NCBI GenBank assembly: GCA_054661495.1
Contig: BAAFSQ010000195.1
Span: 1-18,441 of the forward strand
Origin: Zygophlyctis sp. KS116
Taxonomy: Eukaryota > Fungi > Chytridiomycota
Direction: 5' to 3'
Length of the DNA: 18,441 nucleotides
The number at the start of each line of letters is the position of its first letter. Positions within the stretch are counted from its first letter, which is position 1. A program made the translations under genes and the position numbers. This document shows positions 1 through 3,151 of the stretch, one piece after another. The notes beneath the pieces are model-generated. The model saw only the letters and a program-made list of their open reading frames with translations. It ran no database searches and was not told the origin of the DNA.

Positions 1-679
1 CAAATCTCTGTTCAGCGTTTCTAGCCGCATTTATATTTCCTCTCAATTGATGACGAACAGGTGCGTGCCTGTTTAGTTGAATCGCTGGAGGAGGTAGCTG
101 AAGTTGGGGAAGGGCAGCAACTCGATGATCAGGAGGATTATGTCGATTAGCAGATCTAAGCCTTGCAGCGACAAAGGGATCAGGGGGGGCTTCCTGCTCA
201 TCAAAAGCATTACTACGAGGTCTTTGATGAATTCTAGGGGGTGCTTCCTGCTCATCAAAAGCATTACTACGAGGTCTTTGATGAATTCTAGGTGGTGCTT
301 CCTGCTCATCAAAAGCATTACTACGAGGTCTTTGATGAATTCTAGGAAGTGGTGCATCTTCCTCATCAAAAGCATAGCTTCTTCTTATTTCTGGAAAAGC
401 ATTATCATTTTCTGCCAAGTGATTACCAAAAGGTGACCTGACATTCATTCTAGCAACAGAATCATCCTCATCAAAAGCATTACTTCTTTGTATGCCTGGG
501 AAATCTAACTGATCTTCTTCATGAAGGAGTCTGTTTTGCTGAAGGCGCTGAGGAGATGCGGCTGCTCTATGAGGTAGGAAATTATGAGGAGGTTTTGGCG
601 GACTCGGCTTTCCTAATGGGAACTTAAATGTCATGGCAGAAGCTACAGCAATAATAAGCGAAAATCTTAATCCAATCAT
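1..679 (-). CDS. Secreted repeat-containing protein (family member A), 3'-partial, >=226 aa
   Basis: Hand translation from the ATG at 679 (context aaaaATG) is stop-free to the window edge, which is why the ORF track missed it. It reads MIGLRFSLIIAVASA|MTFKFPLGKPSPPKPP...IQRSNAFDEDD...IRRSYAFDEED...(PRIHQRPRSNAFDEQEAP)x3...NAARNAEQRF. The signal-peptide-like N-terminus ends in ASA, as in the paralog at 1582. Confidence 0.88.
   Translation of the reverse strand, partial: MIGLRFSLIIAVASAMTFKFPLGKPSPPKPPHNFLPHRAAASPQRLQQNRLLHEEDQLDFPGIQRSNAFDEDDSVARMNVRSPFGNHLAENDNAFPEIRRSYAFDEEDAPLPRIHQRPRSNAFDEQEAPPRIHQRPRSNAFDEQEAPPRIHQRPRSNAFDEQEAPPDPFVAARLRSANRHNPPDHRVAALPQLQLPPPAIQLNRHAPVRHQLRGNINAARNAEQRF
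189..350. repeat. 54-bp coding tandem repeat, 3 near-identical units (18 aa PRIHQRPRSNAFDEQEAP on the minus strand)
   Basis: gcttcctgctcatcaaaagcattactacgaggtctttgatgaattctagg starts at 189, 243 and 297. Degenerate cores cctcatcaaaagcat occur near 361 and 466, and a variant occurs in the next gene near 1288. Confidence 0.97.
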
Positions 680-909: not shown

Positions 910-1091
910 ATCTAATCGATGTGATTGTACATCGAAATCAAGTGTTTCATTAATACACAATTCCTCAAAAGATATTTTGAAAGTTCAAACAGAAGGTTTA
1001 ATTGAAATTTCTATAATATTCCTGTTATAAAACTTGATCTTTGCTTTGTTAATCTAACTGCTTTCGGACACGATGTATTTAAGCCACTGGA
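910..1091. repeat. ~180-bp direct repeat, copy 1 (3' flank plus terminal codons PVA* of the secreted-family gene unit)
   Basis: Aligns with small indels to 1792-1971, from atctaatcgatg through cgatgtatttaagccactgga. Confidence 0.95.
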
Positions 1092-1279
1092 GCAATGGCT
1101 TCAAACCCCGCCATACATACCCGGGACTTGAGGAATTGGATTCATTATTATGCAGATCGATCGGACTCTGGACCGCGCTCTCTTTTACTGATGATTGCTC
1201 AAATATTCACATTTTGACTATCGTTTAAAATCACTTTGGAATTTATTCTATTAAGCTCGTTCGCCAATTGTAAGACTGA
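1079..1279 (-). pseudogene. Decayed former 3' coding half of secreted protein B
   Basis: The ATG-1582 frame continues past TAG-1280 as SVLQLANELNRINSKVILNDSQNVNI*AIISKRERGPESDRSA***IQFLKSRVCMAGFEAIAPVA*. It ends at 1079 in the same PVA* as paralog C. The span 1079-1582 is 504 nt, i.e. 168 codons. Confidence 0.65.
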
Positions 1280-1582
1280 CTATTCATCCTCATCAAATGC
1301 ATTGTTTCTTTTTATCTCGTATTTTTGTCTAAGATTGTCTTCATGCGCTTCTAGTTGAGCTTGCTTCAGTTTTTTATATTGAGCAGCAGCTTGGCGATAT
1401 TCGCTGACTTTAAGACCATTATTTTCTTTTGGAATCGCTATTACATCATCCTGTGGGGCAAATTGAACATCTCTTACAGTGTTTTTTGCGGCACCAGATG
1501 GCTTTAGAATGGAACCAAAGTTCAATTTCATTGGCATTGCAGAAGCAATTGCGATCATAATCCAAAAAATAAATCCTTTCAT
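1280..1582 (-). CDS. Small secreted protein (family member B), 100 aa, with SILK/RVxF-like motifs and C-terminal IKRNNAFDEDE
   Basis: Signal-peptide-like MKGFIFWIMIAIASA followed by MPMKLNF (paralog C has FPVKLNF). aaaATG context; no intron needed. Confidence 0.85.
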   Translation of the reverse strand: MKGFIFWIMIAIASAMPMKLNFGSILKPSGAAKNTVRDVQFAPQDDVIAIPKENNGLKVSEYRQAAAQYKKLKQAQLEAHEDNLRQKYEIKRNNAFDEDE

Positions 1583-1791: not shown

Positions 1792-1971
1792 ATCTAATCG
1801 ATGCTGATTGTACATCGGAAATCAAGGGTTTCATTAATAAACAATTCCTCAAAAGATATTTTTGAAAGTCAAACAGAAGGTTTAATTGAAATTTCTATAA
1901 GATTCCTGTTATAAAACTTTATCTTTGTTAAATCTAATTGCTTTAAGACACGATGTATTTAAGCCACTGGA
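1792..1971. repeat. ~180-bp direct repeat, copy 2
   Basis: Homologous to 910-1091 at an offset of about 880 bp. It includes the stop codon and last codons of gene C. Confidence 0.95.
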
Positions 1972-2507
1972 TTAATACTTCTCTGAATTGATTTCTGAGA
2001 TATCCCAGCTTGTCCATTTATCGCTTGTTTTGCATCATATATTGCCTTATGTGCATCAGATATAACTGCACGAATTTCATCTTCATTTGACGCTGAACTT
2101 TCTTTATGTTTTAATTTAGAAACTCCTCTTTCGGCTTTTTCCTGTAGTATTGCTAGATGTTTCATAGCTTCCTTCAGGGCATCATCAAGATCATCTTCAG
2201 CAGCTCTTTGGGCTAAAAATGAATTATCATTTGCTGCAATTGCAATTTCTTCTTTGGGGGCATAAGGGATTAATCTTACTTCTGTATTTGGAGAAAATCT
2301 AACATGCGTTTGGGTGTTTCTTTCAACTCTAGATGATGATTTTAGAATGGGTTGCAGATTTGCTTCCTCATAGGGTGCGTTTGGTGAGGCAGGCGGCTCT
2401 TCCAGAGATGATCTTCCAAATTTCGATTTCAGCGATTTCATAAAGTTCAACTTCACTGGAAATGCAGAAGTGATTGCAATCAATAGAAAAATCATAAATT
2501 TTTTCAT
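1959..2507 (-). CDS. Secreted protein (family member C), 182 aa, with a PILK...HVRF...VRLI motif cassette and a helical C-terminal part
   Basis: Signal-peptide-like MKKFMIFLLIAITSA; aaaaaATG context. The N-terminus and motif block align with member B. Confidence 0.88.
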   Translation of the reverse strand: MKKFMIFLLIAITSAFPVKLNFMKSLKSKFGRSSLEEPPASPNAPYEEANLQPILKSSSRVERNTQTHVRFSPNTEVRLIPYAPKEEIAIAANDNSFLAQRAAEDDLDDALKEAMKHLAILQEKAERGVSKLKHKESSASNEDEIRAVISDAHKAIYDAKQAINGQAGISQKSIQRSINPVA

Positions 2508-2698
2508 TTTTTAAGTATGAAACTCCTGAAACTAATCATCCTTGTAATTACGGCAACTAGTGTTTCAGGTAATCTAAATGATCTGCATTAATGCATCTTT
2601 AAATTTGACATGTTATGAGTGAATTTAGTAGATTCGCCATATTAAGCATAACAAATAAATCACTTTAAACGGTTTAAATTTGGTAAATGATACATTTA

Positions 2699-3151
2699 TT
2701 ATTCGGACTGAAAATTCAACTTGAAATCACTTTCTTCTTTTGTGAGTTTACTGCTCTTGGCTTTCCACAACTTCTTATTTTTAGTAGCTCCATTTGCGGT
2801 ACGTTGTGCTAATTCCTCGGTCTCCTTTTCCCACTGTTTAGTCAGATCAGGATCTCCTTTTAGGCATCTCCACCCCATTAAGCAAATCACAATTAACATT
2901 ATAAATCCCAAAACACCACCAAGAACAATTAAGAAGTCTTTAAGTACAAAGAATGCAGCATCCTTTGAAGGTGCAGGAGTTGCAGTTGTTTTGGGTGGTA
3001 AGTTCTCCGGACGATTGGGCAGATAAGGATTTGCAGTTGGGACAACTTGGCCCAATAATGCAGAAGGTAATTGAATTCCCGTTGGCACAGGGATTTGGGC
3101 ATTGATTACAATACATAAAATGGGTAGAATTAAAAGAGACTTGAGATTCAT
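2699..3151 (-). CDS. Single-pass type I membrane protein of unknown function, 150 aa
   Basis: Signal peptide MNLKSLLILPILCIVINA, Pro/Thr-rich ectodomain, hydrophobic segment FLIVLGGVLGFIMLIVICLMGW, and a basic cytoplasmic tail. aaaaATG context. Confidence 0.82.
   Translation of the reverse strand: MNLKSLLILPILCIVINAQIPVPTGIQLPSALLGQVVPTANPYLPNRPENLPPKTTATPAPSKDAAFFVLKDFLIVLGGVLGFIMLIVICLMGWRCLKGDPDLTKQWEKETEELAQRTANGATKNKKLWKAKSSKLTKEESDFKLNFQSE

Follow-up and report, generated by a model that had tools for sequence, protein, structure and literature searches.

A tandem gene cluster encoding a repeated short motif

The window analysed here is an 18,441-nt stretch of DNA from Zygophlyctis sp. 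KS116, the first 18.4 kb of contig C195 in the 12.7-Mb, 1175-contig eukaryotic assembly that served as the genome searched. At its start lie three minus-strand genes, A, B and C, clustered in tandem as units of about 900 bp, with repetition of the starts of their signal-peptide exons and of a 185-bp block upstream. Proteins A and B carry a short motif, R-S-N-A-F-D-E followed by two mostly acidic residues, that recurs in paralogues elsewhere in the genome. The motif is real and under selection, a constrained element within otherwise fast-evolving proteins.

Protein A consists of a signal peptide followed by a Pro-rich disordered region holding five RSNAFDE-type motifs, and protein B of a signal peptide, a disordered stretch with the strings GSILK and RDVQF, a long helix and a terminal motif (Table 1). 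Signal peptides are predictions, judged by eye from aligned N-termini, in which A, B, C and the paralogues D, F and G share a similar signal-peptide N-terminus. The copies that a first-pass annotation of the sequence had listed, five in A and one in B, are present exactly as described in the minus-strand translations running from 679 to 1 and from 1582 to 1283. Two other open reading frames in this region, 104-436 (+) and 73-375 (-), were rejected as coding: they lack a signal peptide, and only in the chosen frame are the motif constrained and the differences between copies mostly synonymous. Protein C has no intact motif. Its terminus breaks off within one, after R-S, at the start of a conserved intergenic block; a metagenome variant of C (P0003) ends in the same way apart from a single exchange (IQRNINPVA), which makes this ending an old state.

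The repeat arrays of A are of two kinds, a 54-bp unit and an older 105-bp unit. The three full 54-bp units differ from one another by only one or two bases, at third-codon positions and all within Ala-Pro-Pro codons. The proposal of the first-pass annotation that copy number expanded recently is borne out by this near-identity and by the amplification of different units in paralogues (A has three copies of the 18-residue unit, D at least three of the 35-residue one). Three contig ends fall inside the family's repeat arrays: window position 1 (C195), the end of C263 (13851) and the end of C904 (1624). Because A is cut at the start of C195 and D is split between C904 and C263, their copy numbers are underestimated and are given here as lower bounds. 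The 35-residue unit also contains a second block, V-R-x-P-F-G-N-H-L-A-E-N-D (window 383-466; D units L007:1405-1905), that is invariant in A, D and a metagenome orthologue and may be a second linear motif.

The motif is constrained within fast-evolving proteins

Motif statistics were drawn from 21 copies, including those of two metagenome orthologues. Their consensus is [I/L/R]-[Q/P/K/R]-R-S-[N/Y]-A-F-D-E-x-[D/E]. The core had initially been given as R-x-x-A-F-D-E; its R, F, D and E are indeed invariant (21/21), but its extent was drawn too short, as S, N/Y and A are each conserved in 20/21 copies and the core is better written as R-S-N-A-F-D-E plus the two mostly acidic residues. Likewise, Ala at the position that a kinase would read as the phospho-acceptor holds for every copy in A and B but for 20 of the 21 overall: one natural copy, in the third 35-residue unit of P0001 (a metagenome orthologue of D), reads R-S-I-S-F-D-E, with Ser in place of Ala.

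The motif is enriched in the genome, chiefly within the family. Back-translated R-x-x-A-F-D-E matched the 12.7-Mb genome 20 times, compared with two matches for a backwards control pattern, and 15 of the 20 fell inside the family. The seven-residue core is near-invariant across dissimilar surroundings (Pro-rich, Gly/Ile-rich or the end of a helix), and codon choice varies among copies, with Arg as CGT or AGA, Ser as AGT or AGC and Ala as GCT, GCA or GCC. Because these codons vary synonymously, the motif is conserved at the protein level.

Comparison of paralogues, expressed as proportions of non-synonymous (pN) and synonymous (pS) differences, gave the same result. Between A and D, motif codons had a pN of 0.023 and a pS of 0.343, compared with 0.151 and 0.225 for the remaining codons, such that pN/pS was about 0.07 in the motif and about 0.67 in the rest of the protein. 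Between B and F, pN was 0.057 in the motif and 0.333 in other codons. Between D and its metagenome orthologue, pN and pS were 0.046 and 0.286 in the motif and 0.094 and 0.226 elsewhere. B (1283-1582) and its own metagenome orthologue (L020:301-600) differ by three non-synonymous and no synonymous changes, a pattern that would be expected of a fast-evolving secreted protein, in numbers too small for a test.

Family members, locus and genome setting

Protein, profile and pattern searches of the genome recovered a family of about ten signal-peptide genes, seven of them with the motif, and 15 motif copies in all (Table 1). Every member has a signal-peptide-like N-terminus. Gene D, which was analysed exon by exon and contig by contig with the pieces left unjoined, contains a 30-nt intron (GTAAT...CAG, L005:1407-1436) whose position and phase are kept in the lake-metagenome orthologue (L019:150-179). 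F and G, which lie on different contigs, are nearly identical (pS 0.10, a single 3-residue indel) and could be recent paralogues or two haplotypes.

Table 1. Features of the gene cluster and members of the family (unprefixed positions are those of the window).
Feature	Location	Strand	Motif copies	Remarks
Gene A, partial	1..679	-	5	Open frame of 226 codons running off base 1; C-terminus lost at contig start
Predicted signal peptide of A	635..679	-		Basic n-region, hydrophobic core, small residues A-S-A before the cut; by eye
Motif copy 1, R-S-N-A-F-D-E	467..487	-		Context IQRSNAFDEDD; pattern match and copy alignment
Motif copy 2, R-S-Y-A-F-D-E	362..382	-		Context IRRSYAFDEED; pattern match and copy alignment
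Motif copy 3, 54-bp unit 1	305..325	-		Context RPRSNAFDEQE; Tandem Repeats Finder and pattern match
Motif copy 4, 54-bp unit 2	251..271	-		Context RPRSNAFDEQE; Tandem Repeats Finder and pattern match
Motif copy 5, 54-bp unit 3	197..217	-		Context RPRSNAFDEQE; Tandem Repeats Finder and pattern match
Tandem array of 54-bp (18-residue) units	182..375	-		Tandem Repeats Finder: period 54, 3.5 copies, 93% matches
Two copies of older 105-bp (35-residue) unit	356..518	-		Also with second conserved block PFGNHLAEND
Conserved block upstream of A	934..1096	.		Also present upstream of B (1818-1976, 89-93% identity), marking the ~900-bp unit of tandem gene duplication
Gene B	1280..1582	-	1	100 residues; motif IKRNNAFDEDE is the C-terminal end (1289-1309)
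Gene C	1959..2507	-	0	182-residue paralogue; ends IQRSINPVA (1962-1988)
Gene D	Start on C904, end at the end of C263		at least 6	Assembly breaks inside the 105-bp repeats
Gene E	C904		1	Internal motif
Gene F	C18 (L009:1501-1737)		1	C-terminal motif; closely similar to G
Gene G	C70 (L010:1513-1740)		1	C-terminal motif; closely similar to F
Gene H	C263		0
Genes I and J	C112		0	More distant members
[S/P]-I-L-[K/R] cassette	B 1460-1513; C 2250-2350; D exon 1 L005:1221-1406; H L045:1426-1662; C112 genes L046:1357-1875 and 2122-2814			See text

A second recurrent element is a cassette in B, C, D exon 1, H and the two C112 genes, in which [S/P]-I-L-[K/R] is followed after exactly ten residues by V-x-F-[A/S]-P and then by V/I-x-x-I-P. 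It resembles the SILK, RVxF and phi-phi motifs (phi, hydrophobic residue) that dock on protein phosphatase 1 (PP1), and it occurs twice in one C112 protein. When canonical RVxF was defined as [RK]-x0-1-[VI]-{P}-[FW] with an optional preceding [GS]IL[KR], expressions that we take to be the ELM definitions, B, D exon 1 and the first C112 cassette matched; the motif was degenerate in C, H, F, G and the other C112 cassettes and absent in A.

The 185-bp block that lies about 250-400 bp 5' of the A and B start codons is found nowhere else in the genome and is 89-93% identical between its copies, compared with only 35-45% for the coding sequences; it may be a shared promoter retained through selection or gene conversion. 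The gene after the cluster (2699-3151, minus strand) has no significant Pfam match; its 150-residue product combines a signal peptide with a Pro/Thr-rich segment and a single transmembrane helix. Guanine plus cytosine content is about 35%, and the flanking genes are ordinary eukaryotic ones, encoding Rap1-like, ELMO, FHA, MutS/MSH6, cytochrome b2 and carboxylesterase proteins.

An orphan family of predicted disordered proteins

The only relatives were same-species variants from two metagenomes. Word-based searches of 5.8 billion proteins returned only two orthologues, P0001 of D (59% identity to A) and P0002 of B (97%), which come from ENA metagenome assemblies taken to be lake samples. A profile search of 1.84 billion representatives found only six same-species variants and one false match, P0008, a WD40 repeat protein aligned on V-T-S-V-S-F-S-P-D, which was discarded. 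Two JGI metagenome scans gave no relatives. Against Pfam, ten members or fragments of the family returned nothing above noise at E up to 1 or 10; an ESM Atlas feature search with B gave no usable match; the PDB, queried by sequence with the profile of the family and also with the repeat region alone, yielded nothing relevant; and the motif strings turned up in no paper when the literature was searched in full text. So far as these searches reach, the family is an orphan confined to one species-level lineage.

Structure prediction is in keeping with proteins that have no cysteines and no fold. AlphaFold2 gave the repeat-type protein a mean predicted local distance difference test (pLDDT) score of 49.6 and zero secondary structure, and modelled protein B, with low confidence (pLDDT 61), as a signal-peptide helix, a disordered segment (15-58) and one long helix (59-95) ending inside the motif. 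On these models, the family proteins appear to be carriers of short linear motifs, or precursors. There is about an even chance, in our judgment, that the motif acts as a peptide ligand and not as part of a fold.

What the motif might do

The reading that we favour, while putting the chance that it is right at about half, is that RSNAFDE and its two mostly acidic residues form a selected, multivalent short linear binding motif in secreted, effector-like disordered proteins, for which any named partner is only a candidate. Unequal crossing-over has recently altered the number of copies, and the motif is retained while the sequence around it evolves fast. After secretion, the copies would jointly present a docking or decoy sequence to a single partner protein whose pocket is basic and hydrophobic. 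Prime candidates for this partner would be the catalytic cleft of a Ser/Thr phospho-signalling enzyme of the host or prey, either a basophilic kinase or PP1, the latter because several members also carry SILK and RVxF-like PP1-docking motifs. Kinase and PP1 targets are thus special cases of the general mechanism.

Several points weigh against a binding motif in secreted effectors. A conserved Arg followed by a conserved peptide is also how a processing site and its released peptide would be expected to look, and secretion is a by-eye judgment from N-termini. The nucleotide transporter PF03219, considered as a marker of lifestyle, was not found in the genome, a result that is uninformative. At the other extreme, the repeats might be a neutral low-complexity expansion in a fast-evolving orphan gene with no specific function, which would suit a predicted disordered orphan family with recent expansions and no homologues; but the motif is kept in seven genes and in unrelated contexts with synonymous codon changes, and its pN/pS lies roughly tenfold below that of its flanks, and we consider this already disfavoured explanation very improbable.

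A more substantial competitor, raised by the first-pass annotation as its own alternative and unlikely in our estimate, is that the proteins are peptide precursors. The invariant Arg would then be the P1 residue of a proprotein-convertase site, and cuts in the secretory pathway would release small acidic peptides starting with SNAFDE, whether as pheromone-like or signalling peptides or through removal of spacers. The expected ingredients are there, namely a signal peptide, internal repeats and an invariant Arg before a near-invariant Ser; B, F and G have a classical K-R directly before a C-terminal peptide of 8-9 residues, the genome encodes a kexin-type convertase (S8 pro-domain, S8 and P-domain), and variation in copy number among paralogues is typical of pheromone precursors. 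Kex2-processed repeat proteins (KEPs) occur in chytrids, and are defined by KR or RR, less often KK, between repeats (PMC6339444). It is at these boundaries that the alternative falters: the residues before the conserved Ser are QR in nine copies, PR in seven, KR in four and RR in one, so that only 5/21 sites are KR or RR, and in protein A only one site of five is dibasic. Cleavage would yield peptides of 8, 18 and 35 residues that are alike only over the first six to eight, a strain variant (P0007) lengthens the C-terminal 'peptide' of F by five residues, and the Ile or Arg conserved two residues before the Arg is not a Kex2 feature.

The first-pass annotation began by proposing that the copies may be multivalent pseudosubstrate inhibitors in two flavours. 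In this model, which can be widened to stable binding, each copy would engage a basophilic Ser/Thr kinase: Ala occupies the acceptor site, Arg lies at -3 and Phe at +1, and position -5 is either Ile/Leu (CaMK/CDPK-like) or Arg (Akt/S6K-like). At the level of the motif the fit stands, in that 14 of the 21 copies read phi-x-R-x-x-A-F and the other seven R-x-R-x-x-A-F, which is Akt-type, and the natural explanation that this gives for the alternation of Ile and Arg at -5 is the best single point in its favour. CaMKII favours Asp at +2, and PKI uses R-R-N-A-I. The structural CaMKII consensus has been described as R/K-x-x-phi-x-R/K-x-x-S/T-phi, and natural CaMKII partners are known with Ala (Tiam1) or Ile (densin-180) at the acceptor site (bioRxiv 10.1101/2020.10.25.354241). 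Nevertheless, the match is purely one of motif and was found after the fact. It leaves unexplained Ser(-2), Asn(-1), Glu(+3) and the acidic residues at +4/+5, which are as conserved as the kinase determinants; the basic residue at -8 of the full CaMKII consensus occurs in only 2/21 copies; and the Ser at position 0 in P0001 breaks the rule that the acceptor is never Ser or Thr. In addition, signal-peptide proteins would have to enter the cytosol of another cell, the PDB sequence search with the repeat region matched no solved kinase-inhibitor sequence, and at least two further readings can be matched to parts of the motif that are just as short. Kinase pseudosubstrates in particular therefore seem to us distinctly unlikely.

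The PP1 version of the binding hypothesis, which we also rate as rather unlikely, holds that the motif does what the HYNE element does in Inhibitor-2 (PPP1R2): placed where a helix ends, it would cover the catalytic cleft of PP1, while upstream SILK and RVxF-like motifs dock the protein on the enzyme. Inhibitor-2 itself binds PP1 through SILK, RVxF and the HYNE-bearing IDoHA helix, with HYNE blocking the active site (PMC11561318). The order in B is the same, with GSILK, RDVQF ten residues on, a hydrophobic pair and a long helix ending in the motif, and the local strings are alike: Y-E-I-K-R-S-N-A-F-D-E in the family, F-E-M-K-R-K-L-H-Y-N in Inhibitor-2 and F-N-K-K-R-K-S-H-Y-Q in this genome's own Inhibitor-2. 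SILK and an RVxF-like motif at the fixed 10-residue spacing are also found in C and two distant C112 paralogues, an arrangement that arose at a frequency of about 0.001-0.002 per protein in shuffled sequences, and capture of host PP1 through RVxF is known from a pathogen effector, LpPIP of Legionella (PMC12313075).

Set against this, the Pfam IPP-2 profile (PF04979), at E up to 10, matched no family member and, genome-wide, only the canonical Inhibitor-2 at C508, and hhalign gave a probability of 0.2% to the alignment of the family with Inhibitor-2; homology was not detectable in these comparisons. A PDB profile search with the family did not recover 2o8a, and the His-Tyr that sits at the PP1 active site is replaced by Ala-Phe. 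A, the richest of the window genes in copies, has neither SILK nor RVxF, F and G have only K-V-T-V, and one or both docking motifs are missing from A, E, F and G; several cassette copies also fail the strict RVxF definition. The likeness to Inhibitor-2 is architectural and confined to the level of motifs, and possibly reflects mimicry.

Taking the multivalent binding motif a step further, one can imagine a freshwater chytrid-like parasite whose secreted RSNAFDE repeats plug the catalytic cleft of a universally conserved host enzyme, either PP1, as an independently arisen Inhibitor-2 mimic anchored through SILK/RVxF, or a CaMK/AGC kinase, with copy number tuning potency. We think this scenario improbable; if it is true, no multivalent effector of the pseudosubstrate type would have been described before from an early-diverging fungus. 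To our knowledge, little is known of the molecular host interaction of lake chytrid-like fungi, and we know of no characterised effector from this fungal lineage. A selected, amplifiable peptide motif is a compact and synthesisable handle in any event, and a peptide of 10-20 residues could be used to fish for the partner. Were the partner PP1 or a basophilic kinase, the family would represent motif mimicry of core eukaryotic signalling and a natural scaffold for peptide inhibitors; were the repeats instead cut into peptides, it would point to a new signalling peptide of a flagellated fungus.

Comparison with known systems

Each of the candidate functions has a counterpart that the family resembles in part. 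With KEPs and precursors of the alpha-factor type it shares a signal peptide, tandem repeats, a basic residue at each boundary, paralogues differing in copy number and a kexin gene in the genome; it differs in that the boundaries are mostly Q-R or P-R instead of K-R or R-R, and in that conservation straddles the putative cut and does not mark out a peptide of fixed length. PKI, Tiam1, densin-180 and AIP have the same pattern as the motif, with phi or Arg at -5, Arg at -3, a small residue that cannot be phosphorylated at 0 and, next to it, a hydrophobic one at +1. These known pseudosubstrates are single-copy and cytosolic, whereas the family's copies are in tandem in signal-peptide proteins and have the extra conserved S, N and E and an acidic tail, which kinases do not read. 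Inhibitor-2 (PPP1R2/Glc8, PF04979) and protein B are alike in being disordered, with SILK, an RVxF-like motif and a long helix ending in basic-basic-x-x-small/aromatic-aromatic-polar-acidic; the family differs in having A-F for H-Y, a signal peptide and a repeated motif, and the genome separately encodes an ordinary Inhibitor-2. The closest parallels to a multivalent binding motif are Toxoplasma GRA24, with its two kinase-interaction motifs for p38, and Legionella LpPIP. Although the family has no sequence relationship to either, and its motif matches no curated motif class tested, it resembles these effectors, which capture host signalling enzymes, in combining a secretion signal and the lack of a fold with a functional unit that is a short conserved peptide, made multivalent by being repeated.

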